NCBI GenBank assembly: GCA_038087875.1
Contig: JAXLNO010004395.1
Span: 62,001 to 126,000 of the forward strand
Origin: Malacoraja senta
Taxonomy: Eukaryota
Direction of reading: 5' to 3'
Length of the DNA: 64,000 nucleotides
Shown: positions 25,630-59,851 of the stretch, piece by piece
Layout: every line of letters starts with the position of its first letter
How positions within the stretch are numbered: position 1 is the first letter of the stretch
Program-made: the position numbers and the translations under genes
The notes under the pieces: model-generated
Databases searched by the model: none
The model's input: only the letters and a program-made list of their open reading frames with translations
What the model was told of the DNA's origin: nothing

Positions 25630-28600
25630 ATGCAAGACGATAAACAAAAGAAATTTGGAGGAATCACATTCTGCAGTTGGAATATTAGGGTGCTAATGAA
25701 CCAATTAAAAGGGGTAAGATTCTTGCACAATTGAAGTCACTCAAGACGGATGTAATATTCCTACAAGAAACTCACTTGAAACTACAAGCTCAAGCCAGAT
25801 TGAAGGTAAACTGGATAGGCCAAACATACCAATCTTCATATATTTCCAAAGCTAGAGGCACAGCCATCATTATTCGAAAAGGTATACCATTTAAATCGAA
25901 GAATATCATGACAGATAAGGAAGGGAGATACCTTATAGTTACCGGAGAGATTCATGCTACCCCAATTACCTTGGTAAATATTTATGCGCCTAATTTTGAT
26001 AATCCTCAATTCTTTAATTAAATTTTTAATATAATTACAGTTCAATTTATCAAAATGTGATAATTGGGGGAGATTTTAACTGTGTTTTAGATCCATATTT
26101 GGATAAATCTTCACAACAGAGTAGGGGCAACATAAAATCTAAAACCAGGGAAATCTTAAATACTTACATAAAAAATACAAATATAACAGATGTTTGGAGG
26201 ATCGCTAACCCTGTCGGAAGGGAATACTCGTTTTATTCAATGGTACACAAAACTTATTCACGTATCGACTATTTTTGAGTGGATACAAAATTAATCCCCT
26301 ATACAATGAATCCAAAATATCACAATAGTATAATTTCTGATCATTCCCCGTTAACTTTTTTTTTTTAATTAGAGGGAATGACTTCTAATAAATCGTTTTG
26401 GAGGTTTAATCCTCAAATCTTAAATGACCCACAAGGGGAAATATATTTAAAACAACAGATGGAACTTTTTTTAAAGAATAATGACACCCCAGATATCTCA
26501 CCAGTTCTACTATGGGAATCATTCAAAGCAGTTATTATCTATAATCTCATACCAAGCTTTTTTGAATAAAAGGAATAAGAAAGAACAAAGGCAGTTAGAG
26601 GAACGAATTAGAGATTTGGAATTAGACAATGCTAAAGAGCCTACTATAGATAAACATAATAAAATAACAATAATGAAATTTATATTAAACAAAATATTAT
26701 CAACAAATGTTATTAGATTATTTCAAATCACAAAACAGGAACATTTTGAATTTGGGGATAAACCACAAGCGTGAAAAGGATCACATGATTTTAAAGATTA
26801 AATCAGATAAAGGGGAATTGTTAACACTTCCTAAGGATATTAACAAAAGATTCGCTCAATTTTATCAAAATTTATATACATCTAAAGCGGTAGCAGATAG
26901 TACCAAAGTTAGAGAGTTCCTGGAAAATTGTAATCTCCCAAAACTCAATATGAGTGAACAAGAGGAACTAGGTGCACAAGTCTCAACCAAGGAAATAGAA
27001 GAAACAATAAATACATTAAAGAATGGAAAAACTCCAGGACCAGATGGTTTTAGCAATGAATTTTATAAAAGATTTTACGAGATAATTACATCACGACTAC
27101 ATAAAATGTATACATATGCCTTTAAAGAACATACACTTCCAGAAACATTGGCGGAGTCAACGATTACACTTATACCTAAAAAAGGTAAAGATTTAGAAGA
27201 TCCGGGTTCTTATAGAGCTATTGCGCTGCTAAACACAGATCAAAAAATACTAGCGAAAACATTAGCTAGAAGGCTAAGTAACTATGTCAGTAAATTGATA
27301 AATCCGGATCAAACAGGGTTTATACCCAAGAGATACTCAAGCAATAATCTGAGACGTCTGTTTAATATAATGCACTCACATAAAACCGAAGAGCAAGACT
27401 TATCAATTATTTCACTGGATGCAGAAAAAGCATTTGATCAAGTGGAATGGGATTATATGGTTAAAGTATTGCAAAAATTTCAAATGGGTGATAATTTTAT
27501 CGCTTGGGTAAAATTATTATATGAAAGGCCTACGGCCAGAATATTAACTAATAATATTTTGTCCTCGAAATTTCAGTTATCAAGGGGAAATAGACAGGGG
27601 TGTTCATTATCACCTCTGCTATTTGCTCTGGTAATAGAACCGTTAGCGGAAAGTATTAGGATACATCCGAATATTCATGGATATAATACAAAATATTCAA
27701 ATAATAAGATATCTTTATATGCAGATGATGTACTACTATATATTACAAAGTCACTAATTAGTATACCAAATATATTAAATTTAATTGAGGAATTTGGATC
27801 CTTTTCAGGATATAGAGTAAATTGGAATAAAAGTGAAATTATGACGATTAAACCTCAAGAATCGACACACCTGTTAAAATTCCCTTTTAAAATCGCTTCA
27901 GAAAAATTTAAATATTTGGGAATTGAAATTACTAGAAAATATAAATCTCTATTTAATGCAAATTATATGCCCTTACTCAATAAATTAAACACATTGATTA
28001 AATTCTGGAAAACCCTCCCGATGTCTCTTATAGGCCGAATAAATGCTATAAAAATGATTTTTTTACCACAAATTTTATATTTATTCTAGTCATACTTACC
28101 AAATTTTTTTTTTTTTAATTGGATGCCGATATTACAAATTTTATATGGGACTATAAATCTCACAGAATTCAAAGAAAACATTTGTGCAAACCTAAGGAAT
28201 TTGGTGGATTATCACTTCCCAATTTTTTATATTATTATTGTAATAGTAATAGTAATTTTATTGTCAATTCAAATAATGTAACGAGTAGTTACATAGAGGA
28301 TTGAAATTGCGTTTCTCCATACTCCAATGTGCAAGTAATATTTATAACACAGACAGACAGCGTACCAACAAAAATAGACAACGGACATATACATTATATA
28401 AAATATTCATTAATAAAAGGTGCAATATAGCATACTGTGCAAGTAGCATACTGCAGACACTGGGCCAAAGTTAATCTGGCAGTCAGTTGGTCTTTGTGTA
28501 ATGTTCATGGAATTCTCTTAAGTGTGTTGAGTAGTCTGATGGCCTGAGGGAAAAAGCTGTTTTTGAATCTTGTGGTTTTGCTCCGCATGCTGCGGGAGCG

Positions 28601-37106: not shown

Positions 37107-39484
37107 GGCAAAAGGTACAAAACTCCGATAAAGCAACACTTTCAAAGAAATAAAAATCCGATAAACAGGAGGCGCTCGTTTTAACTTGCTGACACCATGT
37201 AAAGATGTTAAGTCTGACTCACTTGTAGCTTTACTTAACGTTTAATGATAACTCAGGTTAAACACGTTCCAGCACTGACTGCACCCAGTCTGTCATCATG
37301 CTGGAACCAGGGGGGAGCAAGAGGGAGAGAGAGTTCTTATACTTGATAACTAAGGCGTGGTTAGTAGTAGTGAGGTAGCTATATTATTGGTTGCATGCAT
37401 AAACCATCTACACTTACCAAATAGTGAAAGGCCTGGATAGAGTGGATGTTGAGAGGATGTTTCCACTAGTGGGAGCATCTCAGCAGAGGGCAAAGCCTCA
37501 CAATTAAAGTACACTCCTTTAGAAAGGAGATGAGGAGGATTTTCTTTATTCAGAGGGTGGTGAATCTGTGGAATTCTGCCACTGAAGGCTGTGGGGGCTG
37601 TCAATGGATATTTTTTTAAGGCAGAGATAGATAGATTCTTCAATAGTACGGGTGTCAGGGGTTATGGGGAGAAGGCAGGAAAATGGGGTTTGGAGGATAG
37701 GATAGATCAGCCATGATAGATGGGACGAATGGCCTAATTCTGTTCCTATCACTTATGATCTTATGAACTTATGATTGAGTAAATAGCTGTCTGTTGTATT
37801 AACAATGACAAAACAAGTATATAGCATGCTAACGTCTTGATAAAACTCATTCAAAAGTATTTTATTAAATGCTCATAATTCAGAAATGACACTGGTGGAT
37901 ATACAATGAAATTCTCGGTTGCACATAAAACACTTCCACAGCTATTACACCACAGCTTTGATAATGAGTATTGTTCCCAGTGCTCTGTAGGGTTAAGAAA
38001 ACACAGCCCCCATACGTTACCGTGTTCCATAAATATTCACAGGACATGGTACTGGGATGTTGTCTATGTGGAGTTTGCATGTTCTCCCTGTGAACATGTG
38101 GGATTTCTCCCGGTGCTCCGGTTTCCTCGCACATCTCAATGATGTGCAGGTTTGTAGGTGAGTTGGCCTTTGTAAAATTGCCCTAGTGTATCGAAAGCGG
38201 ATGTGAAAGAGGGATAACATAGAACTGGTGTGCAAGATGGATGGTATCAACTCGATGAGCTGAAGGCTCTGCATCCATGCTCTATAACTCAACTAAACTA
38301 AGCAATAAGCTGTGGTGTAGAGCGTGGTTCGTATTGAAAACAAAGATCCTTGTTGACTGGCCCATCAAATACTTGAAGCACTGAGTGAAGCATTAAATGC
38401 AAAGGCAATTACTTCTCCACTACACCATCAGGTATGTGAACACGGAATGCAGCTTACAGTATGTGACAAAGAGAAGTGGCAAAATAACTAGGAAGAAACT
38501 GCAGATGCAGGTTTAAACCGAAGATAGGCTCAAAAAGCTGGAGTAACTCAGCGGGTCAAACAGCATTTCTGGAGTCTGAACAAGGATCACATCCCGAAAT
38601 GTCACCTATGTCTTGTATCCAGAGATGCTGTCTGATCCGGTGAGTTTCTCCAGCTTTTTGTGTCTATCTCTGGCAAGATAAGTATATGATGTTTGAGAGG
38701 CTTTTAGATTGACAATCTGATCTGCAGGAAATAGAGGGATATGGATCATGTTGCAGTTGGATGGGATCAGTTTAGCATCTCATCATGTTCACCACAGTCA
38801 TTGTGGGCCAAAGGGCCTCTTCCTGAGATGAACATTTTAATGTTTTATATAAAATAAGATTAGTAATCAGCTGTAAGCCCCCTTGAACAGACTGCATCAT
38901 TCAATAACATTATGTCCAATCTGATTTCGATCAGTTTACTGCATTATTCCTGCAATCTTTGATTCATTTCTGATCTAAAATTCTCTATATCTCAACCTGG
39001 AAAATATTCATTCACCTTGTCTTCACAGCTGGAATAGAAAGTTCAGGCAAATCATACACCTCCTGGAAAATAAATCTTCTTCGTAACTATTTTAAAGAGG
39101 GACCCAACATAGAGGGGCTGCCGAGAACAAAGATAACAAAGAGGGTGCTGGAGTTGGGGGGGGGGGGGGCGGATAACACAGGTGAACCCAACATGGAGGG
39201 GCTGCCGAGAACAAAGAGGGACCATTGGGGACTGTAATGATTACTTTGTAACTGTGTCGACACCCTATACATGGTGACTCTTTGTATGTTAGGCAAAACA
39301 AAGAATTTCACTGTGACATGACACATATGGAAATAAAGTATCAATCAATCAAATAGGCGACCTTTTATTCCAAAATGTGGTGCAATGTATGACTTTGGAA
39401 TCACAGGGTAACTGCAGTGAAGACAGCATTTGAAAAATTAATGGCTGAATGTAAAGCCATCAGTCAGCATTGATACAATAAAGA

Positions 39485-39965
39485 GCATAGAACATAGAAC
39501 AGTACAGCACAAGAACAGGCCCTTTGACCCACAATGTTTGTGCCGAACATGATGCCAAGACCAATTGTTATCTGCTTGCACATAATCCATATCCATCCAT
39601 TCCCTGCATATACATGTGCCTATCTAATAGTCTCTTAAATGCCACTATCATATCTGCTTCCACCTCCACCCCCGGCAGCACATTCCAGTCAATCGCCACC
39701 CTAGCGTAAAACACTTGTCCTGCACATCTTTTTTAAACTTTGCCACTCATTGTAAAGCTGTACCTGCTCTTATTCGATATGGGTAAAAAGTCGGATGGTC
39801 TACCCTATCTCTACTCCTCCCAGTTTGATATATTACTGTCAGGTCTCCCCTCAATCCCCGACATGCCAGAGAAAACAATCCAACTGTCCAGTCTGTCCAA
39901 CTTCTCCCTGTGGCTAATACCCCACTAATCCAGGCATCATTCCGGTGGACCTCCTCTGCATCCCA
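39485..39965 (-). mobile_element. CR1 3' fragment directly following, and overlapping the end of, the TM/cytoplasmic exon (paralogue at 47092-47580)
   Basis: ATGCAGAGGAGGTCCACCGGAATGATGCCTGG corresponds to CR1 VQRRFTRMMPG; (TTCTATG)n tail at 39485-39500. Confidence 0.8.
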
Positions 39966-40157
39966 AAGGAAGCTGATTGTGCTTCATGGTCCTCTCCTGG
40001 TCTCTGCTGTTGTCAGCTGGTCCCTGTTCATTGAAAGGTTTTATCTTTTTCCTCTTATTCCAGCAACCAATTCCAAGGATGATCACCAGGAGAATGAGAG
40101 GAACGATTACAGCTCCAGTCACGATCCTAATCTTTATATCTTCTTTCACTGCCCTCT
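39937..40157 (-). CDS. MHC class I-like transmembrane + cytoplasmic exon, copy A
   Basis: Acceptor ccaacag|AG, phase 1, in frame with the alpha3 exon: ERAVKEDIKIRIVTGAVIVPLILLVIILGIGCWNKRKK...PPE*. A hydrophobic span is followed by a Cys and a basic stop-transfer cluster. Confidence 0.8.
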
Positions 40158-42776
40158 CTGTTGGCATATATAGTGCATTTTAAACATTTATTGATCAATA
40201 ACAACTTTGTAATGATTTTATTATCTAAATTAAACTAGCACTGTTCATATCTAATTACAAAGTAATAAAGTTTTAGATTTATGTATTTATACAGAGGATG
40301 GATGTGCTTAAAATGATCAATGAAAAATCATTAAGCTCATATTAGTATTATGGTATTGAGATTTTATCTGCAGCATTTAATTAAGAATTTAAAGAATCAA
40401 GTACGTCAGAAATAGATGACTATTTGCAGTGTAGAGGTCAACAAGGCCATTTTCTTATGTTGATGATAGTTATTATAGCAAATAAGTGAACCCATTTATA
40501 GTTGATAAAACTTCAAAGGTTTTAAACTTTGCTGATATTTCAATGATAACTGAGAGTTTAATTTTCTCTCTCTCGCTCTCTCTCTCTCTCTCTCGCTCTC
40601 TCGCAACAGGTGCTGCTACTTCAGACTGATAATGGGGTCGGTTATGGCACCACTGTTGGTCTTTTGTGTAACTAACTACTATCAGAAAATTAGCTAGATG
40701 CCCAAGGAAGAAGATAAGAGACCTTGTCCAGGATCAGGCCTATCTTGCTTCCACTGTTCCTACATTTGGATGAGTGAGTTAAGGGTGACATATGAATAAT
40801 TTTGACCATAAGATATTGGAGCAGAATTATGCCTTTCAAGTCCATTGAGTCTAATCCACCATTCAGTCATGGCAGATCGATTTTTATTGCTAAATCCCAT
40901 TCTCCTGCCTTCTCCCTGTAACCTTTGTCACCCGTACTAATCAAGAACCTATCAATCTCTGCTTGAAAAATATGCAATGACGACGCACACAGCTGTTTGT
41001 ATCAATGAATTCCACAGATTCACCACCCTGTGACTAAAGAGATTCCTCCTCATCTCCATATTGAAGGTAGGTATTTTTAGTGTGAGGCTGTGCTAGACTC
41101 TCCCATTACTGAAAACTTCCTTTCCACATCAACTAACCAGGCATTTCATTATCTGGTAGGCAGGGCCGGATTTACATATAAGCAGGACAAGCTTCAGTTT
41201 AGGGCCTCGAGATCTAGGAGGGCCTCGCAGAGCCAGATTTACCACTAGGCTTCATAGGCTGAAACCTCGGGCCCTGAAATGTAGGGGGCCTCCGGCCAAG
41301 GCAGGACACCTGCCGTTCAACTCTGGGCAGCCCCCCTCTCTATCTCTCTCTCCGCCCGCTATCCGCTCTCCGCTCACTCCTCATCCGCCAGCACGGCAGG
41401 CCGCCTTGTACATGTGCATTGCTACGGCCAGCACGTCCTCCCCTGCACATGCGCACAACCACGGCCCGCACATCATCGGCCGCCCTGCGCATGCGCACTG
41501 CCACGGCAACTGGTCAGAGCAGGGCACTTTCTCCCTCGCTTTGAATTGTGGGAGATTTGGCCGCCATTGCTGTCCGGTCGCTGCCTCGCCGCAACCGCTG
41601 AAAACTAACGCAGAATCACTCCCTGACCCTGGATCAGGAGTAACTCCCTGGAGTAACTCTCGCTTCTGTTTTCCTGATCCTCCATAAACATTCTAAAAGG
41701 AATTTAAACTGGAGGTGGTGGAGGGCTGAACAATAACAGCCTATTGCATTTTATCTGTTTATTTATTGTGTATATATATGGTCTATGGTATATAAACACA
41801 CTGAACTTTTATCTCCTGTTCTGTATTATGTTCACATATTCTGTTGTGCTGCAGCAAGCAAGAATTTCATTGTCCTATCTGGGACACATGACAATAAAAC
41901 TCTCTTGATTCTTGACTTGGACTTAAGCAAAAAAGGGTTCTTGGGGGAGAAAGAGGTACCTTAAATTTAGTTGCGTCTGGTTGGGTAATTATGGTAGGGT
42001 GAAGAATATTCCATGCTTTAATTGTGCAGGGGAACTCCACGGAGCAGCCAGCAACTCAGGATAGAAGAAATTGGGTGACGTTTCGGGTAGATACCCTTCT
42101 TTAGACTCCCTCTGGTTTTAGTGTCTTTAGTTTAATTTAAAGATACAGCGTGAAAACAGGCCCTTCAGCCCACCGAGTCCACGCCGACCATTGATCACCC
42201 ATACACTAGTTCTTTCCCACACATTAGCGAAGTAAGTCAAGAGTCAAGAGTGTTTTATTCTCTCACGTCCCAGTTAGAACAATGAAATCCTTACTTGCAG
42301 CGGCACAACAGAATATGTAACCATAGTACTCTGTAAACAATGTTATAAACGAGAAAACAAAACGGTGTATATTTATATATGAATATATAACTATATAAAT
42401 ATATATGTGTGTGTGTGTATAATATATATACCCACACACACACACACAATTTCCCTCCTGGGATTAATAAAGTTCTATTGTATAGTATCGTGTGTGTAGG
42501 AAGGAACTGCAGATGCTGGTTTAAACTGAAGATAGACACAAAAAGCAGGACAATATTAGGAAAATATTACGTTTTGGGTTGGGTCTGAAATAGGTTCCTG
42601 CACATCTTTGGAATGTGGAAGGAAACAAGAGCACCCGAAGAAAACCCATGCGATCAAAGGGAAAGGAGCAAACTCCATACAGACAGCACCCATATTCAGG
42701 ATCAATTCCGGGTCTCTGGAACTTTTAGGCAGCAACTTTATGGCCAATGTACAGCCCCATAGTCTTGAACTTAATT

Positions 42777-43390
42777 AAAACAACAAGTGTAGCATTTCCT
42801 GCAGTTGCAAGGGAAAGTGCCAGGAGAGGGGGTGGTTTGGGTGGGAAGGGACGAATTGACCAGGGAGTTACGGAGGGAGCGGTCTCTACGGAAAGCCAAC
42901 AGGGGAGGAGATGGGAAGATGTGGTCGGTGGTGGGATCCCATTGGTAGACAAAAAAGCTGGAGAAAATCAGCGGGTGAGGCAGCACCTGTGGAGCGAAGG
43001 AATAGACGACGTTTCGGGTCGAGACCCTTCTTCAGATTGATGTCGGGGGGGGGGGGGGGATGACATGAAAAAGAAAGGAAGAGGCGGAGACAGTAGGCTG
43101 TGGGAGAGCTGGGAATGGGAGGGGAAGGAGGGAGAAAGCAAGGACTACCTGAAATTAGAGAAGCCAATGTGCTTACCGCTGGGGTGTAAACTACCCAAGC
43201 AAATATGAGGTGCTGCCCCTCCAATATGCGGTGGGCCTCATTCTGGCCATGGAGGAGGCCCAGGACAGAAAGGTCGGATTTGGAATGGGAGGGGGAGTTG
43301 AAGTGTTGAGCCACCGGGAGAACAGGTTGGTTATTGCGAACTGAGGTGTTGTGCGAAGTGATCACCAAGCCTGCGCTTGGTCTCACCGAG
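42777..43390 (-). mobile_element. Penelope GIY-YIG 3' fragment inside the hAT (paralogue ~54320-54916)
   Basis: PVAQHFNSPSHS, TFPCNCRKCYTC and a terminal repeat with a hammerhead core. Confidence 0.85.
43008..43035 (-). ncRNA. Minimal hammerhead ribozyme core (Penelope type)
   Basis: CTGAAGA-AGGG TCTCGA CCC-GAAAC GTC: CUGANGA, stem II, GAAA, palindromic ACGT helix III and a GUC cleavage triplet. Confidence 0.6.
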
Positions 43391-44551
43391 GTTGATCATA
43401 CGCTGAATAATCCAACCACATTTTTGTTTGGAAGTGGAAAGAAATAATAGAAATTGCATTCATTGCAACGTGTAAAAAGAGTTGAGATACAGTATTATAA
43501 TTTTGCTGCATGTCATTGTGGTATATATCATGTCCTGATTGGTGAATATGTTTAGTTTGTGGCTTTATTTGAAGCAGAAATAATATGTGAATGCTTCATT
43601 GAGCATAATTCTGACTGGTAACTATGCACTTCGGCCAAGCACATTATCGCACGCGCCATGCAAGCCATCTTAAATAACCACCTAAACTGTCATTTGGCAA
43701 CTTAAAAAGCTACCAAGGTTGCCCGGCTGACAACAGAGATAAAAAATTAAGTGAGAGCCCTGCAAGGTGTATAATATTTTTGACACTGTCATAGGCCTTT
43801 CTTACATATGCTGTCACAACGCACTGTAGTCTCTAAACAACCCTTCAGTAATTTTCCTTGCCTTCCATTTCAGAATAATAGTGTTTTAAGCCAATAACTC
43901 GACACAAGCACAGGCAATAAATAAATAAATAAATAAATAAAGCCCAGCTTTCCAGCCCCTTATCTCATTGGCCACGCTCGGCTGCAAATTGGTGTCAATC
44001 TGGTGGACCATCTTCCTCTGGTCGTGGGGGTGGGGGGTTGGGGGGCCTCACAAGTGGAACAGCTTAGGGCCTCTCTTCATCTAAATCCGGCCCTGCTGGT
44101 AGGTTTCAATGAGATTCCCACCTCATCCTTCTAAATCCCATGAGCACAGGCACAGAGACTTCAAACACGCCTCATATGTTAAATCAATCATCCCCAAGAC
44201 ATACATCCTCTGGACCCTCTCCAAAGCCAGCACATCCTTTCTAATATGGAGCCCAAAACTGCTCACAATATTACAAATGTGTCCTCACCAGTGCCCGATA
44301 AACCTCAGCATTATATCATTGTTTTTATATCCTAGGCCCCCCAAAATGAATGCTGGCATTGCATTTGCCTTACTTACCACCGACTCAATCTGCAAATGAA
44401 CTATTTGGGAATCCTGCACTAGTACTCCCACTTTGTAGCTCAGATTTCTGAATTCTCTCCCCATTTAGTAAATAGTCTATGTCTTTATTCTGACTGCCAT
44501 AATGTAAAACCAGACACTTGCTACACTGTATTCCATTTGGCTCTGCTTTGC

Positions 44552-45205
44552 CCACTCGGTGGAACTGCTGCCTTACAGCACCAGAGACCCGGTTCAATTC
44601 TGACTACGGGTCCCGTCTGTACAGAGTTTTGTACCTTCTCCCCGGGACTTGCGTGGGTTTTGCCTGGATCTCCAATTTCCTCCCTCAGTCCAAAGACATA
44701 CAGGTTTGTAGGTTAATTGGCTTGGTATAATTGTAAATTGTCCCATAATAAGTAAGATAATGTAAGTGTGCAGGGATCGCTGGTTGACGCAGACTCGGTG
44801 GGCTGAAGGGCCTGTTTCTGCGCTGTATCTCTTAAACTAAAACCACATTCCATTGACTATCAATAATTCTGGGCAATTAGATAACCACAAATTATTAATG
44901 GGTGGCACAGTGGCGTAGCGGTAGAGCTGCTGCCTTACTGCACCAGAGACATGGGTTTGATACTGACTACAGGTACTGTCTGCAAGGACATTGTATGTTC
45001 TCCCTGTGACTGCTTGGGTTTTCTCCGGGTGCTCCGGTTTCCTCCCACACTCCAAAGAAATACGGGCTTGAGGGTTACTTGGCTTAGGTAAAATTGTAAA
45101 TTGTCCCCAGTGTGTTGGTTAGTGTAAATGTACAGGATGATCACTGTTCAGCAAGGACTCGGTGAGCTGAGGGGCCTGTATCTGCACCATATCTCTAAAG
45201 TTTAA
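44552..45205 (+). mobile_element. Two tandem HE1-like SINEs (paralogues 56036-56690)
   Basis: Head, V-domain and tail motifs. Confidence 0.8.
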
Positions 45206-45307
45206 AATCTAAATCCATAGTTTAGTTAAGAGTGTGAGTTGAGGCTGTTATCTCAGTCCAGGAGGTTTATTGTCTCAAGTGATCAGCCTCATTGACTTGC
45301 CACTTAC

Positions 45308-45568
45308 CCTGTGGAACATTGACTCCCTGCAGCAGAGTTGCATGTTCGATGTAACAGGAGAATTTTGCCACATCTTCTCTACTCAGTTGAATTGTATTCT
45401 TCAGCTGGTAAGTCCCATCCCAATTGGGCAACAGATCACTGGATTCAGACTCACCATCTCTCAGCCACGTTACATCGATGGCCCGTGGGTAGAAGCCTGT
45501 GACAAGGCAGGAGAGTCTCAGTGATTGCGACCCATCACGTTTAATCCCAATAAACACCTCAGGGGTTT
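45308..45568 (-). CDS. MHC class I-like alpha3 (Ig C1-set) exon, copy A
   Basis: ttgcag|AA...CAG G|gtaagt, 261 nt, phase 1/1: ETPEVFIGIKRDGSQSLRLSCLVTGFYPRAIDVTWLRDGESESSDLLPNWDGTYQLKNTIQLSREDVAKFSCYIEHATLLQGVNVPQ. Shows C-x-x-TGFYP, W, LPNxDGTYQ and F/YxC-x-x-x-H. Confidence 0.9.
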
Positions 45569-47551
45569 CTGCAAGTGTAAGAAGTGTCAGAATCAGTGAA
45601 GACATGAACAAAAGCCTTCAATTGTAAGATCACTGCAACTCACCACTTTCCCAATCAGAGTTTTTTCTCCAGCTGAACAAAGTTTCCAGCCTAGACCCAA
45701 AATGCTGGAATAACTCAGCAGGTCAGGCAGCATCTCTGGAGAGAAGGAATGCCCAGAGATGCTATCTGACCCACTGAGTTACTCCAACATCTTCTATCTT
45801 CGGTGTAAACCAGCATCTGCAGTTCTATCTTGCACAACGTTTACAGCCTTTTCTCTTTTCATTTTGCATTTCTGGCAAAACAACAAAACATTTAGTTTTA
45901 ATACAACTGACATGCTCCTTATCTTAGCTCCAGACTTTAACTGACAGCGCAGATGAAAGGGGAATGCAGGGCCTAATGGAGGAGTATAACTCACCATTGG
46001 GATTGATACTGTAGACATGATTGCTTCTACTTGTTCATGAATCTGCTGAATAATAACACTAAATATTCCAAGAGGGAATGGGAGGAAGACGTTCTTCAAA
46101 TAGAGAACTGTTGGAAATTGAATGTCACCATCCCAAGGAGTAATAGAGGCAAATAGAGAATCTGATTGGGTTTCTGATCAGCACAGCAACAGACCCTTCA
46201 GGCACAAGGTCAATGCTAAACATAAGACCAAGATACATATTCCTCCATTTCCTGGATATCTATATGACTGTGGATAGAGGACACTGGTACAATATTTATT
46301 TTCACTTGCACTTCCTACCCACTGGCTCCATCTAAGAGGCACGTTGCCAGACAATTTACTGATACCCTCGCCCAAGAACAGGGTGGCGAAGCGGTCGAGC
46401 TACTGCCTTACAGCGCCAGAGACCTGGGTTTGTTACTAACTAACGGGTGCTTGTTTTTACACATGTTCACCACAGTCATTGTGGGCCAAATGGTCTCTTC
46501 CCGAGATGAACATTTTAATGTTTTATATAAAATAAGATGAGTAATCAGCTGTAAGCCCCCTTGAACAGACTGCATCATTCAATAACATTATGTCCAATCT
46601 GATTTCGATCAGTTTACTGCATTATTCCTGCAATCTTTGATTCATTTCTGGTCTAAAATTCTCTATATCTCAACGTGGAAAATATTCATGCACCTTGTCT
46701 CTGCAGCTGGAATAGAAAGTTCAGGCAAATCATACACCTCCTGGAAAATAAATCTTCTTCGTAACTATTTTAAAGAGGGACCCAACATGGAGGGGCTGCC
46801 GAGAACAAAGAGGGACCATTGGGGACTGTAATGATTACTTTGTAACTGTGTCGACACCCTATACATGATGACTCTTTCTATACCTTGTGTATGTTATGCA
46901 AAGCAAAGAATCTCACTGTGACATGTCACATGTGATAATAAAGTATCAATCAGTCAAATAGGCGACCTTTTATTCCAAAATGTGGCGCAATGTATCACTT
47001 TGGAATCACAGGGTAACTGCAGTGAAGACAGCACTTGAAAAATTAATGGCTTAATGTAAAGCCATCAGTCAGCATTGATACAATAAATAGCATAGAACAT
47101 AGAACAGTACAGCACAAGAACAGGCCCTTTGACCCACAATGTTTGTGCCGAACATGATGCCAAGACCAATTGTTATCTGCTTGCACATAATCCATATCCA
47201 TCCATTCCCTGCATATACATGTGCCTATCTAAAAGTCTCTTAAATTCCACTATCATATCTGCTTCCACCACCACCCCTAGCAGCACATTCCAGTCACTCG
47301 CCACCCTTGGCGTAAAACACTTGTCCTGCACATCTTTTTTTAACTTTGCCACTCATTGTAAAGCAATACCTGCTCTTATTTGATATTTCCTTCCTGGGTA
47401 AAAAGTCAGATGGTCTACCCTATCTCTACTCCTCCCAGTTTGATATATTACTGTCAGGTCTCCCCTCAATCCCCGACATTCCAGAGAAAACAATCCAACT
47501 GTCCAGTCTGTCCAACATCTCCCTGTGGCTAATACCCCACTAATCCAGGCA

Positions 47552-47772
47552 TCATTCCGGTGGACCTCCTCTGCATCCCAAAGGAAGCTGATTGTGCTTC
47601 ATGGTCCTCTCCTGGTCTCTGCTGTTGTCAGCTGGTCCCTGTTCATTGAAAGGTTTTCTCTTTTTCCTCTTCTTCCAGCAACCAATTCCAAGGATGATCC
47701 CCAGGAGAATGAGGGGAACAATTACAGCTCCAGTCACGATCCTAATCTTCATATCTTCTTTCACTGCCCTCT
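47552..47772 (-). CDS. MHC class I-like TM + cytoplasmic exon, copy B
   Basis: 221 nt, 6 substitutions versus copy A (counted by eye), frame intact. Confidence 0.8.
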
Positions 47773-47785
47773 CTGTTGGCATATA

Positions 47786-49404
47786 TAGTGGCTTGCAAAA
47801 GTATTCATACCCCTTGAACTTTTCCACATTTTGTCACGTTACAACCACAAGCGTAAATGTATTTTATTGGGATTTTATGTGATAGACCAACATAAAGTGG
47901 CACATAATTGTGAAGTGGAAGGAAAATGTTACATGGTTTTCAAATTTTTTTACAAATAAAAAACTGAAAAGTGTCGCGTGCGAAAGTATTCAGCCCCCTT
48001 TACTCTGATACCCCTAAATAAAATCCAGTGCAACCAATTGCCTTCAGAAGTCACCTAATTAGGAAATAGAGTCCACTTGTGTGTAATCTAATCTCAGTAT
48101 AAATACAGCTGTTCTGTGAAGGCCTCAGAGGTTTGTTAGAGAACATTAGTGAACAAACAGCATCATGAAGCCCAAGGAACACACCAGACAAGTCAGGGAT
48201 AAAGTTGTGGAGAAGTTTAAAGCAGGGTTAGGTTATAAAAAAATATCCCAAGCTTTGAACATCTCACGGAGCACTGTTCAATCCATCATCCGAAAATGGA
48301 AAGAGTATGGCACAACTGCAAACCTACCAAGACATGGCCGTCCACCTAGACTGACAGGCCGGGCAAGGAGAGCATTAATCAGAGAAGCAGCCAAGAGGCC
48401 CATGGTAACTCTGCAGGAGCTGCAGAGATCCACAGCTCAGGTGGGAGAATCTGTCCACAGGACAACTATTAGTCGTGCACTCCACAAATCGGGCCTTTAT
48501 GGAAGAGTAGCAAGAAGAAAGCCATTGTTGAAAACCCCCCATAAGAAGTCCCATTTGCAGTTTGCCCCACAAGCCATGTGGGGGACACAGCAAACACGTG
48601 GAGGAAGGTGCTCTGGTCAGATGAGACCAAAATTGAAGTTTTTGGCCTAAATGCAAAACGCTATGTGTCGCGGAAACCTAACACTGCACATCACCCTGAA
48701 CACACCATCCCCACTGTGAAACATGGTGGTGGCAGCATCATGCTGTGGGGATGCTTTTCTTCAGCAGGGACAGGGAAGCTGGTCAGAGTTGATGGGAAGC
48801 TGGATGGAGCCAAATACAGGGCAATCTTGGAAGAAAACCTGTTAGAGTCTGCAAAAGACTTGAGACTGGGGCGGAGGTTCACCTTCCAGCATGACAATGA
48901 CCCAAAACATACAGCCAGAGCTACAATGGAATGGTTTAGATCAAAGCATATTCATGTGTTAGAATGGTCCAGTCAAAGTCCAGACCTAAATCCAATTGAG
49001 AATCTCTGGCAAGACTTGAAAATTGCTGTTCACAGATGCTCTCCATCCAATCTGACTGAGCTTGAGCTATTTTGCAAAGAAGAATGGGCAAAAATTTCAG
49101 TCTCTAGATGTGCAAAGCTGGTAGAGACATACCCCAAAAGACTTGCAGCTGTAATTGCAGCGAAAGGTGGTTCTACAAAGTATTGACTCAAGGGGGCTGA
49201 ATACTTTTGCACGCGACACTTTTCAGTTTTTTATTTGTAACAAAATTTGAAAAGCATGTATCATTTTCCTTCCACTTCACAATTATGCACCACTTTGTGT
49301 TGGTCTATCACATAAAATCCCAATAAAATACATTTACGTTTGTGGTTGTAACGTGACAAAATGTGGAAAAGTTCAAGGGGTATGAAAACTTTTGCAAGCC
49401 ACTG
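47786..49404 (+). mobile_element. Tc1-like DNA transposon (IR/DR type), full length, 1619 bp
   Basis: TA TSD, ~212-bp TIRs with internal AAAGTATTCA repeats; the empty site is present in copy A. Confidence 0.95.
48165..49186 (+). pseudogene. Tc1 DD34E transposase with one frameshift (~48566)
   Basis: Paired-like HTH, GRPP, ARRKP, WSDETK, QHDNDPKH and SPDLNPIE. An apparent 2-bp C insertion splits it into 161-aa and 202-aa ORFs. Confidence 0.93.
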
Positions 49405-49507
49405 TATAGTGCATTTTAAACATTTATTGATCAATAACAACATTGTAATGATTTTATTATCTAAATTAAACTAGCACTGTTCACATCTAATTAAAAAGTA
49501 ATAAAGT

Positions 49508-51741
49508 AACATATTATCCTCGAAATTCCAACTATCAAGGGGAAATAGACAACGATGCTCATTATCACCACAGCTGTTTGCTCTCATTATTGAACCGCTA
49601 GCAGAAAAAATTAGAATACACCCTGATATCCATGGATATAATACTAAAGTCTCATATAATAAAATATCTTTATACGCGGCTGATATATTACTGTACATTA
49701 CAAAACCTCAAATCACTATACCAAATATATTAAATTTAATTGAAGACTTTGGATCTTTTTCTGGATATAGAATAAATTGGAATAAAAGTGAAATTATGTC
49801 AATAAAACCGAAAGATTCAACACATCTTTTAAAATTCCCTTTTAAAATAGCTACAGAAAAATTTAAATACTTGGGAATCGAAATTACCAGAACATATCAA
49901 GGTATGTTTAGGGCAAATTTTGACCCCCCTACTTAATAAATTAAACACACTAATTAAATTCTGGAAAACGCTACCGATGTCTTTAATAGGCCGAATAAAC
50001 GCAATAAAAATGATCTTTCTACCACAAATTTTATACCTATTTCAATCGATTCCTATATACTTACCAAAGAATTTTTTTAAAAAACTCGACTCAGATATCA
50101 CTAATTTTATATGGGACTATAAATCACATAGAATACAAAAAACTCATCTGAATAAACCTAAAGTATTAGGGGGTTTAGCACTACCTAATTTTATGTATTA
50201 TTATTGGTCAGTAAATATTAAAAATATGATTCAACTGATGGATAACTCCGCCCAGCAAGTAGACTGGATTGTAATGGAGAAAGAGGATTGCTCCTCTAGA
50301 AACATTGGAGCGATCCTCCTTTCTCCAATGAAATTGAATAACATAAATTATAATAAGAACCCAATTATTCATAGTACAATCTGAATTTGGAAACAAATAA
50401 AACAAAATTTAAAATTAAGAAATTTATCACTTTTATTACCTATAGTTAATAACCCTTCGTTTAATCCCTCTATTATAGATAAAGCTTTTACACATTGGGA
50501 TAGACTAGGAATTAAAACGCTTGGTGACTTGTATGAAACTGGAAAATTACTTTCATTTCAACAATTACAAATAAAATATAAACTTGGAAATAATCAATAT
50601 TTTAAATATTTTCAAATATGCGACTATTTGAAAAAATATACAAAAGATCATTATAATAACCCAGTAGATGTATTGGACGAGGCAATGCAGATAAAAGCTG
50701 AATCAGCAAACTTAATATCATATTTGTATAATATTATCTTAAATGTACAAATACCATCTACGGAGGGTATCAGAAGAGACTGGGAACAAGAGTTAGCTAT
50801 TAAAATTTCAAAGGAAAGTTGGAATGAACACTTATTAAACGTGCATAAATGCTCGATTAATGTAAGACACACTTTAATACAATTTAAAATTTTACATAGA
50901 TTATATTATTCGAAAACTAAAATTCATAAAATTTTCCCAAATGTATCATCTATTTGTGATAAATGTCAATCCCAAGAAGCTACTATAGCGCACTCATTCG
51001 TTTTCTGTACAAAAATTCAAAAATTTTGGAATGAAATTTTTGAAATCTTTACAAAGTTATTTAAAACAAGACTGATACCCAAAGCAGAATGGATTATCTT
51101 CGGAATAACGGAAGATGGTCCAGAACTAAATGTGTTTCAAAAGAAACTAATGGACTATGGGTTAATAACTGGAAAAAAGCTAATTCTAAAATTTTGGAAG
51201 AAGGCTCCAATACCAACTATAAATATGTGGATTTCAAATATGTTTGAAACATTACACCTAGAAGAGATAAGACTCCTCCTAGCAGGTAAACCAGATCACT
51301 TCCACCTGACGTGGTCTGCATTTATAGAATTATTACAAATATAGGGTGCAAAAGTACTTTAAAAAAAAATTTGAGGTCAGGTAAGGGGGGATGATAGTTG
51401 AAGAGTTGGTATGTCCCATTTACGTAATGCTCATAGAAATATTTGTTTCTCTCTTTTTCCTCTTTCTCTTTCTCTTTCTTTTCTAGGGTCTATTTCTTAA
51501 CTCTTTTTCTTTTGTTTTTAATTTTGCTCTCATAGGGTCTTCGTCCTTTTTTGTTGTCACATTTTCTACACTTTCACTTTTTCCTTCACTTTCTTCTTTC
51601 TTTCAATCTTTTCCTTTTCTAGTGTAAAAAATAAATGGAGTACATTAATTGTAAGAAGATATAAATGACAAGTACTAATGTATGTGGTTGTAATGTAATG
51701 TACTTCTAATAAATAAAAATTAAAAAAAAAAATAATAATAA
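49508..51741 (+). mobile_element. 5'-truncated L1 (second subfamily)
   Basis: RT C-terminal half, Cys-rich CDKC...HSFVFC, A-rich tail, TSD TAATAAAGT; absent from copy A. Confidence 0.92.
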
Positions 51742-52056
51742 TAATAAAGTTTTAGATTTATCTATTTATACAGAGGATGGATGTGCTTAAAATGATCAAT
51801 GAAAAATCATTAAGTTCATATTAGCATTGAGGTATTGAGATTTTATCTGCAGCATTTAATTAAGAATTTAAAGAATCAAGTACGTCAGAAATAGATGACT
51901 ATTTGCAGTGTAGAAGTCAACAAGGCCATTTTCTTATGTTGATGATTGTTATTATGGCAAATAAAAGTGAACCCATTTATAGTTGATAAAACTTCAAAGG
52001 TTTTAATCTTTGCTGATATTTCAATGATAACTGAGAGTTTAATTTTCTCTCTCTCG

Positions 52057-52094
<38 letters not shown>

Positions 52095-52657
52095 CTCTCG
52101 CAACAGGTGCTGCTACTTCAGACTGATAATGGGGTCGGTTATGGCACCACTGTTGGTCTTTTGTGTAACTAACTACTATCAGAAAATTAGCTAGATGCCC
52201 AAGGAAGAAGATAAGAGACCTTGGCCAGGATCAGCCTATCTTGCTTCCACTGTTCCTACATTTGGATGAGTGAGTTAAGGGTGCCATATGAATAATTTTG
52301 ACCATAAGATATTGGAGCAGAATTATGCCTTTCAAGTCCATTGAGTCTACTCCACCATTCAGTCATGGCAGATCAATTTTTACTGCTAAATCCCATTCTC
52401 CAGCCTTCTCCCTGTAACCTTTGTCACCCGTACTAATCAAGAACCTATCAATCTCTGCTTGAAAAATATGCAATGACTTGACCCACACAGCTGTTTGTAT
52501 CAATGAATTCCACAGATTCACCACCCTGTGACTAAAGAGATTCCTCCTCATCTCCATATTGAAGTTAGGTATTTTTATTATGAGGCTGTGCTAGACTCTC
52601 CCATTACTGAAAACTTCCTTTCCCATCAACTAACCAGGCATTTCATTATCTGGTAGG

Positions 52658-55602
52658 CAGGGCCGGATTTACATATAAACTGGACAAGCTTCAGCTTAGG
52701 GCCTGGAGATCTAGGAGGGGCTCGCAGAGCCGGATTTACCACTAGGCTTCATAGGCTGAAGCCTCGGGCCCTGAAATATAGGCGGCCTCCGGCCAAGGCA
52801 GGACACCAGCCGTTCAACTCTGGGCGGCCCCCCTCTCTATCTCCCTTTCTCTGTCTGTCACTCTCCGTGTCCGGGTCTCCACTCTCCGCTCGCTCCTCAT
52901 CCGCCGGCACGGCCGGCCGCCTTGTACATGCGCACTGCTACGACCAGCACATCCTCCCCTGCACATGCGCACAACCACGGCCAGCACATCATCAGCCGCC
53001 CTGCGCATGCGCACTGCCACGGCAACTGGTCAGCGCTGGGCACTTTCTCCCTCGCTTTGAATTGTGGGAGATTTGGCCGCCATTGCTGCCTCGCCGCAAC
53101 CGCTGAAAACTAACACAGAATCACTCCCTGACCCTGGATCAGGAGTATCTCCCTGGAGTAACTCTCGCTTCTGGTTTCCTGATCCTCCATAAACATTCTA
53201 AAAGGAATTTAAACTGGAGGTGGTACAGGGCTGAACAATAACAGCCTATTGCATTTTATCTGTTTATGTATTGTATATATATATATGGTCTATGGTATAT
53301 AAACACACTGAACTTTTATCTCCTGTTCTGTATTATGTTCACATATTCTGTTGTGCTGCAGCAAGCAAGAATTTCATTGTCCTATCTGGGACACATGACA
53401 ATAAAACTCTCTTGATTCTTGACTTGGACTTAAGCAAAAAAGGGTTCTTGGGGAAAAAAAAGGTACCTTAAATTTAGTTGCGTCTGGTTGGGTAACTATG
53501 GTAGGGTGAAGACTATTCCATGCTTTAATTGTGCGGGGGAACTCCACGGAGCAGCCAGCAACTCAGGATAGAAGAAATTGGGTGACGTTTCGGGTAGATA
53601 AACTTCTTTAGACTCCCTCTGGTTTTAGTGTCTTTAGTTTAATTTAAAGATACAGCGTGAAAACAGGCCCTTCAGCCCACCGAGTCCACGCCGACCATTG
53701 ATCACCCATACACTAGTTCTTTCCCACACATTAGCGAAGTAAGTCAAGAGTCAAGAGTGTTTTATTCTCTCACGTCCCAGTTAGAACAATGAAATCCTTA
53801 CTTGCAGCGGCACAACAGAATATGTAACCATAGTACTCTGTAAACAATGTTATAAACGAGAAAACAAAACGTGTATATTTATATATGAATATATAACTAT
53901 ATAAATATATATGTGTGTGTGTGTATAATATATATACCCACACACACACACACACACAATTTCCCTCCTGGGATTAATAAAGTTCTATTGTATAGTATCG
54001 TGTGTGTAGGAAGGAACTGCAGATGCTGGTTTAAACTGAAGATAGACAAAAAAGCTGGAGTAACTCAACAGGTCAGACAGAATCTCTGGACAAAAGGAAA
54101 ATATTACGTTTTGGGTTGGGTCTGAAATAGGTTCCTGCACGCCTTTGGAATGTGGAAGGAAACAAGAGCACCCGGAGAAAACCCATCCGATCAAAGGGAA
54201 AAGGAGCAAACTCCATACAGACAGCACCCATATTCAGGATCAATTCCGGGTCCCTGGCACTTTTAGGCAGCAACTTTATGGCCAATGTACAGTCCAATAG
54301 TCTTAAACTTAATTAAAAGGACAAGTGTAGCATTTCCTGCAGTTGCAAGAGAAAGTGCCAGGAGAGGGGGTGGTTTGGGTGGGAAGGGATGAATTGACCA
54401 GGGAGTTACGGAAGGAGCGGTCTCTATAGAAAGCCAACAGGGGAGGAGATGGGAAGATGTGGCCAGTGGTGGGTCCCATTAGTAGACAAAAAAGCTGTAG
54501 AAAATCAGCGGGTGAGGCAGCATCTGTGGAGCGAAGGAATAGACGACGTTTCGAGTCGAGACCCTTCTTCAGATTGATGTCGGGGGGGGGGAATGACATG
54601 AAAAAGAAAGGAAGAGGCGGAGACAGTAGGTTGTGGGAGAGCTGGGAATGGGAGGGGAAGGAGGGAGAAAGCAAGGACTACCTGAAATTAGAGAAGCCGA
54701 TGTGCATAGCGCTGGGGTGTAAACTAACCAAGCAAATATGAGGTGCTGCCCCTCCAATATGCGGTGGGCCTCACTCTGGCCATGGAGGAGGCGCAGGACA
54801 GAAAGGTCGGATTCGGAATGGGAGGGGGAGTTGAAGTGCTGAGCCACCGGGACATCAGGTTAGTGATTGCGAACTGAGTGGAGGTGTTGTGCGAAGCGAT
54901 CGCCAAGCCTGCGCTTCGGTTGATCATACGCTGAATAATCCAACCACATTTTTGTTTGGAAGTGGAAAGAAATAATAGAAATTGCATTCATTGCAACGTG
55001 TAAAAAGAGTTGAGATACAGTATTATAATTTTGCTGCATGTCATTGTGGTATATATCATGTCCTGATTGGTGAATATGTTTAGTTTGTAGCTTTATTTAA
55101 AGCAGAAATAATATGCGAGTGCTTCATTGAGTATAATTCCGACAGGTAACTATGCACTTCGTCCAAGCACATTATCGCACGCGCCATGCAAGCTGTCTTA
55201 AATAACCACCTAAACTGTCATTTGGCAACTTAAAAGCTGCCAAGGTTGCCCGGCTGACAACAGAGAAAAAAAATTAAGTGAGAGCCCTGCAAGGTGTATG
55301 GGCCTTTCTTACATATGCTGTCACAACGCACTGTAGTCTCTAAACAACCCTTCAGTAATTTTCCTTGCCCTCCATTTCAGAATAATAGTGTTTTAAGCCA
55401 ATAACTCGACACTAGCACAGGCAATAAATAAATAAATAAATAAAGCCCAGCTTTCCAGCCCCTTATCTCATTGGCCACGCTCGGCTGCAAATCGGTGTCA
55501 ATCTGGTGGACCATCTTCCTCTAGTCGTGGGGGTGGGGGATTGGGGCGGGGGGCTCACAAGTGGAACAGTTTAGGGCCTCTCTTCATCTAAATCCGGCCC
55601 TG
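52658..55602. mobile_element. Non-autonomous hAT (Tip100-like), copy B
   Basis: Same TIRs as copy A; TSD CTGGTAGG/CTGTTAGG. Confidence 0.92.
54545..54572 (-). ncRNA. Minimal hammerhead core (G-U wobble in stem II)
   Basis: CTGAAGAAGGGTCTCGACTCGAAACGTC. Confidence 0.5.
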
Positions 55603-56786
55603 CTGTTAGGTTTCAATGAGATTCCCCCCTCATCCTTCTAAATCCCACGAGCACAGGCACAGAGACTTCAAACATTCCTCATACGTTAAATCAATCATCC
55701 CCAGGACATACTTCCTCTGGACCCTCTCCAAAGCCAGCACATCCTTTCTAATATGGAGCCCAAAACTGCTCACAATATTCCAAATGTGTCCTCACCAGTG
55801 CCCGATAAATCCTCAGCATTATATCATTGTTTTTATATTCTAGGCCCCCCGAAATGAATGCTGGCATTGCATTTGCCTTACTTACCACCGACTCAATCTG
55901 CAAATGAACTATTTGGGAATCCTGCACTAGTACTCCCACTTTGTAGCTCAAATAGTCTATGTCTTTATTCCGACTGCCAAAATGTAAAACCAGACACTTA
56001 CTACACTGTATTCCATTTGGCTCTGCTTTGCCCACTTAGTGGAACTGCTGCCTTACAGCGCCAGAGACCCGGGTTCAATTCTAACTACGGGTCCCGTCTG
56101 TACAGAGTTTTGTACCTTCTCCCCGGGACTTGCGTGGGTTTTGCCTGGATCTCTGGTTTCCTCCGTCAGTCCAAAGACATACAGGTTGGTAGGTTAATTT
56201 GCTTGGTATAATTATAAATTGTCCCCTAATAAGTGAGATAATGTAAGTGTGCAGGGATCGCTGGTTGACGCAGACTCGGTGGGCTGAAGGGCCGGTTTCT
56301 GCGCTGTATCTCTTAAACTAAAACCACATTCCATTGACTATCAATAATTCTGGGCAATTAGATAACCACAAATTAATAATGGGTGGCACAGTGGCGTAGC
56401 GGTAGAGCTGCTGCCTTACTGCACCAGAGACCTGGGTTTGATACTGACTACAGGTGCTGTCTGCAAGGACATTGTATGTTCTCCCTGTGACTGCGTGGGT
56501 TTTCTCCGGGTGCTCCGGTTTCCTCCCACACTACAAAGACATACAGGCTTGTAGGTTACTTGGCTTAGGTAAAATTGTAAATTGTCCCCAGTGTGTTGGT
56601 TAGTGTAAATGTACGGGATGATCACTGTTCAGCGTGGACTCAGTGAGCTGAGGGGCCTTTATCTGCACCATATCTCTAAAGTTTAAAGTCTAAATGCACA
56701 GCTTAGTTAAGAGTGTGTTGAGGCTGTTATCTCAGTCCAGGAGGTTTATTGTCTCAAGTGATCAGACTCATTGACTTGCCACTTAC

Positions 56787-56986
56787 CCTGTGGAACATTG
56801 ACTCCCTGCAGCAGAGTTGCATGTTCGATGTAACAGGAGAATTTTGCCACATTTTCTCTACTCAGTTGAATTGTATTCTTCAGCTGGTAAGTCCCATCCC
56901 AATTGGGCAACAGATCACTGGATTCAGACTCGTGGACCCCCTCACCATCTCTCAGCCACGTTACATCGATGGCCTGTGGGTAGAAG
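56787..56986 (-). pseudogene. MHC class I-like alpha3 exon, copy B, 5'-truncated
   Basis: FYPQAIDVTWLRDGEGVHESESSDLLPNWDGTYQ...VPQ G|gtaagt. The first Cys and the acceptor are replaced by a hAT end. Confidence 0.9.
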
Positions 56987-58512
56987 CAGGGCCGGCCTTA
57001 GGAGGTGCGGGGCCCAATTGGGAAAAATTTTCGTAGAAATATAAATAAATAATTATAAATGAGTCACGTGCCGTGAGTAACATGACAATTCGGGGTAGAG
57101 TTCCTTTCACAGCGTGTGGGTCTAGCCAGGGGTAAAGTTGCGAGGAGGGAAGGAGCGTTGAGAAGGAGCGGGTCGGGTTCATGCCAGTAACACTCACTCA
57201 CTGCTGCCGCTGCGCTCCGGGCGCGGAGCCACCGCATTGTGGCCGGGGAGGGAAGCAGCTCGCGTGGCTACGAGCGGCCTCCATCACCGGACAGCGGAAC
57301 CGACTGCCATCTCAGCGCCTTCTGCCGGCCCGCTCACCTCTGGCAGTGCTCTCCGTCTGAACAGTGAGGGGACCAGCTCAAGAGCAAAGATCATAGAGCA
57401 GAGTGGGTCAGCGGGTGATGGATAACATCACACCGGGCGGTGGAGCTTACTCCTGTGTCAGCGCGAACAAGGGATCAATTGAGGTTACTCGCCCTGACAT
57501 ATGGAGTAAGCTCCACTGCCCGCTGTCCTGTTATCCATCGCCCACTGACCCGCTCGTGTTGGATGATCCCCGGTCGACCCCCTCCTTCTCAAACCTCCTG
57601 CCCTCCCCACAACTTTATCCATGGACAGACTACCCACACGCTGTGAAATTAACTCTCTCTCCCCCCCCCCCCCCAGCAGCGCTGTCCTTTTACAGCCGCT
57701 TCCCACTTTACAGCCGCTTCCCATCAGCTGCTAGCAATGAGGGATAGACTTGGCTATACCTCAGTACAGCAACATCGTCCTTGATGTTGCTGTACTGAGG
57801 GATAACGAAGTCTATCTTTCTTGGCTAATAACCTAACCTTCGGCCTCCAAGATGCGGTTACATTTTCCAGCAATGTTACAAAATTTTGAGATTTTTAAAA
57901 TCAAGTCTGCAATTTTCTCTAACTCTGAAATTGGAGATAGACAAAAGCTGGAGTAGCTCAGCAGGACAGGCAACGCAGCGACTCTGGAGAGAAGACCCTT
58001 CTTCAGACTGAACTGAACTCTCGTCGGTGAGAGTACTTGTGATTGTCTGAAGAAGGATCTCAACCAGAACCGCTACCCTCTCCCCAGAGCCCCTGCCCGT
58101 CCCGCTGAGCCACCAGACAGGGAGTTGAAGGTAGACACAGGGAGGTCCACCTTCAACTTCAGAGCCAAACAAAAAACACAGAGTGCTGGAGGAACTCAGC
58201 GGGCAAGACAGCACCCGCGGAGGGAACATATCACTTATCAGGAGCCGCCACGGGCCAGGACTCTTCCCCCCCTCCCCCCAACAGAAAGGAACCGCAGATG
58301 CAGCCATCACCGCACAATGTCTAAGAAGGAACTGTAGATGCTGGAAAATCGAAGATAGACAAAAATGCTGGAGAAACTCAGCAGGTGTGAAGCCCTGTCC
58401 CACTGTGCAAGTTCACCCAAGAGCTCTCCCGAGTTTTAAAAAAATCAAAACTCGTGGTAAACACGTAGAATGAACGTAGCAGGTACGTCGGAGCTCGGAA
58501 CGTTTCAAAAGA

Positions 58513-59145: not shown

Positions 59146-59851
59146 TCTTAGCGCTAACGGCAGGTACTCGGGAAACGTGGTAACTCGTGAAGATTTTTCA
59201 ACGTTGAAAAATGTCCACATGTAAAATATACTCAGGATGAAAAAAAATTATACTTTTTAACACGTAGTCATACCGTAGTAGCTCGTGAGTTTACCGTAGT
59301 AGGACCTGGTGTTCTATATCACTATTGTATGTTCATGATGGAAATAAGAATACTCTGTATATTCATTACCTTTGAATTGTAGTTTTATGTAATCCTCCCA
59401 TAATTTCTGAGTTCCATTTCACAATATCTATCAGACATACAGAATGTTGCAAGGTAATGTCTTGCCCAAACTCAGTTGTATCTTTCTATCTCAATAAATA
59501 TCACAAAATATGCCATTGTTTCATCCACATTATGACAAAATATAGAATGTAGGTTATTTGTTATCAGTCACCCCATCCCAGAAACAACAGTACTTAAAGA
59601 ACATTTGTTTTACTAATTTACGAGCATGTACCATAGGTTGATCCATATCCAACAAAATGTTGTGATAATTGCATAAAAGGTATTATTGTCTAAGAAATTT
59701 GGTGTGGAATGATAATCCATCTCAGTACTCATTTAGGCAAGTCCCAAGCTATAGATACTTTTCCCCCACCCCCAATCCCCCTCGCCCGATCTTCATTGAA
59801 TCTACCATTTGACTAATCTTTTACTCAGCTGCTGTAACGTTTCCTTCCTAT

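Follow-up and report, generated by a model that had tools for sequence, protein, structure and literature searches.

Two exons of the skate Malacoraja senta look like the second half of a gene that has lost its first. They lie within 64,000 nucleotides (64 kb) of contig JAXLNO010004395.1 (positions 62,001 to 126,000 of assembly GCA_038087875.1), which we call the window and number from its first letter. One encodes the alpha3 domain of a class I molecule of the major histocompatibility complex (MHC), the other its transmembrane (TM) segment and cytoplasmic tail. Missing are alpha1 and alpha2, the exons for the groove. Does this module still serve a class I gene whose other exons lie farther away, does it encode a groove-less membrane protein of its own, or is it a relic? 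Here we describe the anatomy of the exons, map the junctions around them, report the absence of groove exons from the 64 kb and place the module in its class I lineage. The most likely explanation, which we hold with reasonable confidence, is that the stretch is the 3' half of a skate non-classical MHC class I gene, present twice in tandem and now non-functional debris of birth-and-death evolution.

The intact module, copy A, lies on the minus strand. Its alpha3 exon (45308-45568, 261 nt) has phase-1 borders and encodes an immunoglobulin (Ig) domain of the C1-set (Pfam PF07654, E 2.9e-13) that keeps the Cys-Cys pair and the conserved Trp (LSCLVTGFYP, VTWLRDG, FSCYIEH). The solved structures that best match it are CD1c, MR1 and class I alpha3 domains. 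An intron of 5.15 kb (40158-45307), which contains a hAT-like non-autonomous element and repeats resembling short interspersed nuclear elements (SINEs), leads to the second exon (39937-40157, 221 nt). This exon codes for a connecting peptide followed by a hydrophobic span; the tail is first basic and then polar, and the exon ends in the stop codon TGA at 39939-39937. All splice sites are canonical AG/GT: ...CTTGCAG stands before the alpha3 exon and GTAAGT after it, and ...CCAACAG precedes the TM exon. With phase 1 at both introns, 159 codons are open in the spliced frame. Among the sequencing runs listed, none recorded as RNA holds either exon. An earlier note on this DNA had claimed that the alpha3 exon is spliced in frame, through canonical sites, to a single TM and cytoplasmic exon, and the exon borders bear this out. 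The 3' untranslated region (UTR) and the flank within the duplicated unit follow at 38784-39936. They hold an AATAAA (39369-39364) whose position matches that in L001, the locus of an intact class I gene of the little skate whose protein we call P0006.

Are the groove exons simply hard to see? Our searches spanned the whole window, to its end at 64000, and combined tblastn with P0006 (word size 2) and with all 88 class I proteins with an unfiltered scan of six-frame open reading frames (ORFs) of at least 20 amino acids, using a hidden Markov model (HMM) of the lineage. Exactly four class I exons were detected: the alpha3 and TM exons of copy A, and a partial alpha3 and a TM exon of a second unit, copy B. 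Neither tblastn nor the lineage HMM found an alpha1 or alpha2 exon on either strand of the 64 kb. The earlier note had seen no groove exons, and these searches bear it out.

To which class I lineage does the module belong? A HMMER scan that covered 1.84 billion representatives returned two close relatives, P0006 and P0007, both from the little skate. P0006 (359 amino acids) has alpha1, alpha2, alpha3 and TM parts and carries Pfam domains MHC_I (PF00129) and C1-set; in L001 its exons lie at 10003-10263 (alpha1), 12701-13021 (alpha2), 18995-19276 (alpha3) and 21938-22174 (TM). The alpha3 domain of the window is 86% identical to that of P0006 by tblastn, with the indel counted, and 91% by phmmer; its identity to P0007 (263 amino acids) is 89%. 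The description of the domain as divergent needs tempering, given an identity of 86-91% to the alpha3 of an intact skate paralogue. At 54-72% identity, P0006 has orthologues in eight species of shark as well as in sawfish, manta and stingray. In a tree of alpha3 from 88 class I sequences, with support given by the Shimodaira-Hasegawa-like approximate likelihood ratio test (SH-aLRT), both window copies join P0006 and P0007 in a skate clade (99) that is nested in the clade of the lineage (98). The 58 classical-type shark sequences ('F10 alpha chain-like') form a clade of their own (99). The domain thus groups with a non-classical class I lineage, apart from Ig and T-cell receptor (TCR) constant domains and from class II, as the earlier note had expected. 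These comparisons place the module in a conserved, mostly single-copy lineage of non-classical class I (MHC-Ib) genes of sharks and rays.

The anatomy of the module is also that of the lineage. A single terminal coding exon for TM and tail is the plan of all its members, including the sawfish gene, and copy A has such an exon in frame after alpha3, as the intact skate and sawfish genes do. The end of the domain, VNVPQ in place of the usual terminal Trp, had been singled out as unusual. The ending is real, and it is no oddity of copy A: it is common to four of four batoid genera of the lineage, alpha3 ending in ..VPQ in all batoid members and in ..VPW in sharks. The coordinates of the sawfish orthologue, P0151, coincide exactly with those of LOC127585976, which has been listed within the sawfish MHC as an MHC-Ib gene (Verissimo et al. 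2023, PMC10751288, supplement). NCBI names for members of the lineage are automatic only, and the lineage is called 'MR1-like' there. According to reviews (PMC12562908), UDA, UFA and UGA are single-copy, and for UFA and UGA our literature search found reviews only.

In skates the lineage is not single-copy. Copies A and B differ from L001 by 9% and from L002, the little-skate locus of P0007, by ~12%, and L001 differs from L002 by 13.6%. These distances imply at least three diverged loci in skates of an otherwise single-copy lineage. L002 is itself partial: alpha2 and alpha3 alone are detectable in 24 kb. The P0007 model (L002 10001-14232, JAMYXN010000412.1) runs from half of alpha2 through the intron into alpha3. 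L002 thus seems to be a further partial copy, and its gene model is doubtful. In the sawfish locus, L003, the alpha3-TM intron contains a degenerate alpha3-like piece (20618-20752) that is 60% identical to P0151 residues 297-339. Judged from this piece, partial duplication of alpha3 may recur in the MHC-Ib lineage.

How did copy A come to lack its first half? Both tblastn with the spliced product and comparison of the window with itself place copy B upstream of A in the sense of the gene. Unit A (38784-45496) and unit B (46462-56987) show 93-97% raw identity, unit B being split by a transposon block of ~4 kb (47791-51741). The window is collinear with L001 from the alpha2-alpha3 intron through alpha3, TM and many kilobases of 3' flank, and it is not collinear with the alpha1/alpha2 part. 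Below 38784 the flank of copy A stays collinear with L001. On the other side, 893 nt of the alpha2-alpha3 intron remain in front of A (45569-46461, minus strand). This remnant is collinear with L001 (13300-13656 plus 18480-18994) and with L002 (13086-13944). Position 46461 corresponds to L001 13300, ~280 nt past alpha2, and there the remnant ends. At 46461/46462 it is fused to the 3' flank of copy B, at a point that matches A 38784 and L001 ~23346.

At the fusion the sequence passes in one clean step from B's 3' flank into the intron, with no homology between the partners beyond ~2 nt. Homologous recombination between SINEs was considered as its cause and ruled out, since the partners lack homology at the switch point. 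The junction instead bears the signature of a non-homologous tandem duplication that reached from a point in the intron to ~1.15 kb past the stop codon. This partial duplication added copy A as its downstream unit, with a breakpoint within the gene, 893 nt before alpha3. Because the intron remnant stops at the duplication junction, there is no alpha2 upstream of that remnant.

Copy B, also on the minus strand, is the broken member of the pair. Its alpha3 exon (56787-56987) is truncated at the 5' side and begins at about exon nucleotide 77 (FYPQAID...). The acceptor, 24 codons and the first Cys are gone, and the donor GTAAGT is retained. Its TM and cytoplasmic exon (47552-47772) is open and differs from that of A at 6 of 221 nt. 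The 3' UTR and flank of B (46462-47551) have their own AATAAA (46974-46969), a signal that both units retain and that stands ~570 nt past the stop in L001. The alpha3 remnant begins exactly after the final base of the terminal inverted repeat (TIR) of an element of ~5.06 kb (56988-62047, minus strand; TIRs CAGGGCCGGYCYTAGG, 14/16 match). Simple insertion of this element into the exon was ruled out, as its far end is flanked by neither the missing half-exon nor a matching target duplication: its outer flanks are TGGCTATA and CTTCTACC. Self-comparison revealed no second copy of the 893-nt intron remnant of A in the window. These results point to a deletion or rearrangement beside the element that removed the 5' part of the B alpha3 exon together with some length of upstream sequence.

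We propose the following history. A non-homologous tandem duplication would have copied the region from a point in the alpha2-alpha3 intron through ~1.15 kb past the stop codon, creating copy A without promoter, leader, alpha1 or alpha2. Copy B would be what remains of the parent gene at its 3' end, and copy A would have come to lie beyond B's terminal exon and poly(A) signal. At a later time the first 76 nt of the B alpha3 exon would have been lost, along with the preceding intron, at the edge of the ~5 kb TIR transposon; a Tc1-like element would also have landed in B, almost at the acceptor of the TM exon. We infer that no working class I heavy chain is made with either unit today. The earlier note had read the exons as relics of birth-and-death evolution in a non-classical class I lineage; the lineage clade, the duplication breakpoint inside the gene and the transposon-broken upstream unit all support that reading.

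Do the substitutions in copy A show any sign of constraint? Of 6030 aligned sites outside the exons, 219 are mismatched between A and B (3.6%); of 410 sites within them, 8 are (2.0%). Six of the eight exon differences are non-synonymous and two synonymous, small counts whose ratio fits neutrality, being that expected without constraint. When the changes are polarised by L001 and L002, the A branch carries a Gln-to-Arg change at 45485-45483, a Gly-to-Val change in the TM span, a Lys-to-Asn change, one synonymous change and an in-frame deletion of 12 nt. The deletion removes four codons between 45451 and 45450 (GE[GVHE]SESS). Together with CGG at 45485-45483 and GTG within 40089-40081, it is a private marker of A. 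It occurs only in A among 14 aligned sequences, the length of the segment being constant in B and in 12 skate, ray and shark relatives. By the alignments, it would sit between strand C and the LPN.DGT turn of alpha3. The open frame of A is less telling than it seems. At the indel and substitution rates of the non-coding part, 482 neutral coding nucleotides of the age of A stay free of both stops and frameshifts with a probability of ~0.27 (0.70 x 0.39), so the intact frame is no evidence of function. It probably reflects nothing more than youth.

Several observations nevertheless speak against calling copy A debris. The exons have diverged less than the non-coding sites, a deficit of marginal significance (Poisson P ~0.04); 250-nt windows of the comparison vary from 0 to 22 differences. 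The splice sites of A are perfect, its frame is open and both Ig cysteines are in place. Its only lesion keeps the frame and probably falls in an exposed loop. And with B broken, A is the sole usable alpha3/TM pair at the locus.

These observations are the starting point for an alternative in which a long intron rescues the parent. Its leader, alpha1 and alpha2 exons would lie beyond 64000 and splice past B to the alpha3 and TM exons of A, giving a full-length non-classical chain. Copy A offers the one complete pair of these exons in the window, and B alpha3 has no acceptor. At the B TM exon, the acceptor has the Tc1-like element only 10-18 nt upstream, which could weaken it. Since all the introns are phase 1, a splice to A would keep the frame. 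Divergence is slightly lower in the exons than in the introns. The structure of the locus argues otherwise. What flanks the 5 kb element is not B's missing half-exon and the window holds no second alpha2-alpha3 intron, so a deletion has taken out upstream sequence. The required intron would exceed 18 kb and cross a terminal exon with its own AATAAA. The changes on the A branch (three non-synonymous, one synonymous and one deletion) look neutral, and neither gene models nor assembled ORFs lend support. We consider such a rescue, the chief alternative to our reading, unlikely.

A different objection is that the tandem arrangement is itself an artefact of assembly. A and B would then be haplotypes or dispersed paralogues wrongly joined, and the orphan state of A would be unreal. 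In the little-skate assembly the gene family does sit on small unplaced scaffolds. Moreover, no listed sequencing run holds all of the sampled exon words of the window, the best holders reaching 0.43-0.68. Against a misjoin, the window has no run of N, and the junction is one clean switch whose A side runs on into flank collinear with L001. A divergence of 3.6% together with large transposon insertions between A and B exceeds the usual difference between haplotypes. Both independent breakpoints, 46461/2 and 56987/8, would have to be false. The tandem duplication with subsequent decay remains our explanation, and an artefact seems very improbable.

Could copy A nonetheless be alive in some form? 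It might have captured an upstream exon and become a groove-less, single-Ig membrane protein, or it might serve as the new alpha3/TM end of a transposon-damaged parent. We give this little credence. The first form, in which an unrelated leader is spliced to 45568 and yields a one-domain membrane protein resembling beta2-microglobulin, had been raised in the earlier note as the work of a distant leader. The open frame, the good acceptor and phase-1 borders compatible with Ig-superfamily leader exons would permit it. A scan of the strand of A from 45569 to 64000 for a leader-like exon (ATG, hydrophobic core, phase-1 GTRAG donor) gave no candidate, a weak negative given the crude filter. Among public protein models and assembled ORFs, P0006:192-359 matched only P0007 and the alpha3 exon matched nothing, again a weak negative since the search was limited by length. 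No protein of 47-294 amino acids with the alpha3 domain of the window is on record, and a free alpha3 would be without its normal partners. With no leader-like exon in the window and no public model, we regard the groove-less protein as extremely unlikely. That the domain belongs to another C1-set family (Ig or TCR constant, class II, W-category or tapasin-like) is virtually out of the question and is refuted by the data already given: Pfam reports only a generic C1-set domain, but the 86-91% identity of the domain is to alpha3 in P0006, which bears PF00129 besides, the intron and flank DNA is collinear with a class I gene, and its place in the tree lies within the lineage (support 98 and 99).

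Transposons make up most of the window, and we saw no further cellular gene in it. A 354-residue ORF on the plus strand (23532-24593), beginning with Met, has no Pfam match. The hAT-like non-autonomous element, ~2.9 kb long, occupies the alpha3-TM intron of both copies (41161-44095 in A, 52658-55602 in B). Its TIR is CAGGGCCGG..., its ends read CAGGGCCGGATTTAG... and its target duplication (CCTACCAG) is 8 bp long. It is absent from L001. Its presence in A and B alike makes it older than the duplication. The ~5 kb element beside B alpha3 is composite, and its 16-nt TIRs are related to those of the intron element; a CA/GT-rich tract within it (~61050-61780) yields spurious ORFs of 140-210 amino acids on both strands. 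The Tc1/Sleeping-Beauty-type transposon in front of the B TM exon (47782-49408) has inverted ends of 219 nt that are 95% alike. It looks young yet is frameshifted: its transposase is split across two frames (HTH_Tnp_Tc3_2, 2.5e-22; HTH_SB, 2.5e-18; DDE_3, 1.2e-10). Fragments of long interspersed nuclear elements (LINEs) continue from it to 51741. Elsewhere, a LINE at 26689-28086 has an open reverse-transcriptase ORF of 466 amino acids (RVT_1, 5e-40), and another at 62974-63762 has an endonuclease ORF of 263 amino acids with a starting Met (Exo_endo_phos, 3.7e-07), for which an exact look-up returned no matching record. The last ~7 kb, to 64000, consist of the TIR element and LINE pieces.

How does the locus compare with systems already known? 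The closest is L001 of the little skate. Its TM/cytoplasmic exon is ~78% identical to that of the window, the splice sites and the single TM and tail exon are the same, and introns and 3' flank are collinear at ~89-91%. Unlike the window, L001 has alpha1 and alpha2, it has 4.8 kb extra in the alpha2-alpha3 intron, and it is without the four-codon deletion of copy A. The sawfish (Pristis pectinata) gene for P0151 belongs to the same lineage, is 72% identical to P0006 and likewise has an alpha3 that ends in ..PQ. It is complete (alpha1, alpha2, alpha3 and one TM and tail exon), single and MHC-linked, whereas the window has 3' halves only.

The nearest solved structure is chain A of PDB 9CH4 (268 amino acids), an 'Ig-like domain-containing protein', for which our literature search found no paper that names it. 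It matches alpha1-alpha3 of P0006 with E 2.9e-60 and the window alpha3 alone with E 1.6e-16. Its score of 207 bits is far below the 402-563 bits of the full-length orthologues of the lineage, so it represents a sister lineage rather than the same gene. The alpha3 domains of mammalian MR1 and CD1, which follow it among the PDB matches, are C1-set domains that share with that of the window the pattern FYP...VTW...LPN.DGT..., ...C.V.H. This is a distant similarity only, and the window has no groove to compare.

Mammalian MHCs contain truncated class I fragments, such as HLA fragments without 5' exons, that were left by segmental duplication and transposable-element insertion. These are likewise partial class I genes of a birth-and-death family, in another lineage and another host. 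The skate locus allows both its duplication breakpoints and the parent-type gene to be placed to the base.

What does the locus mean for the MHC of skates? Its value is mainly for annotation: the exons of copies A and B should be counted neither as a gene nor as a new type of molecule. Were copy A to splice to upstream exons, it would be a case of exon rescue through partial tandem duplication; nothing here points that way. The breakpoints at 46461/2 and 56987/8 could be markers for dating and genotyping the expansion. The locus also adds a mapped example of how an MHC-Ib lineage with one copy in most sharks and rays has expanded in skates and is being eroded there by partial duplication and transposon hits.

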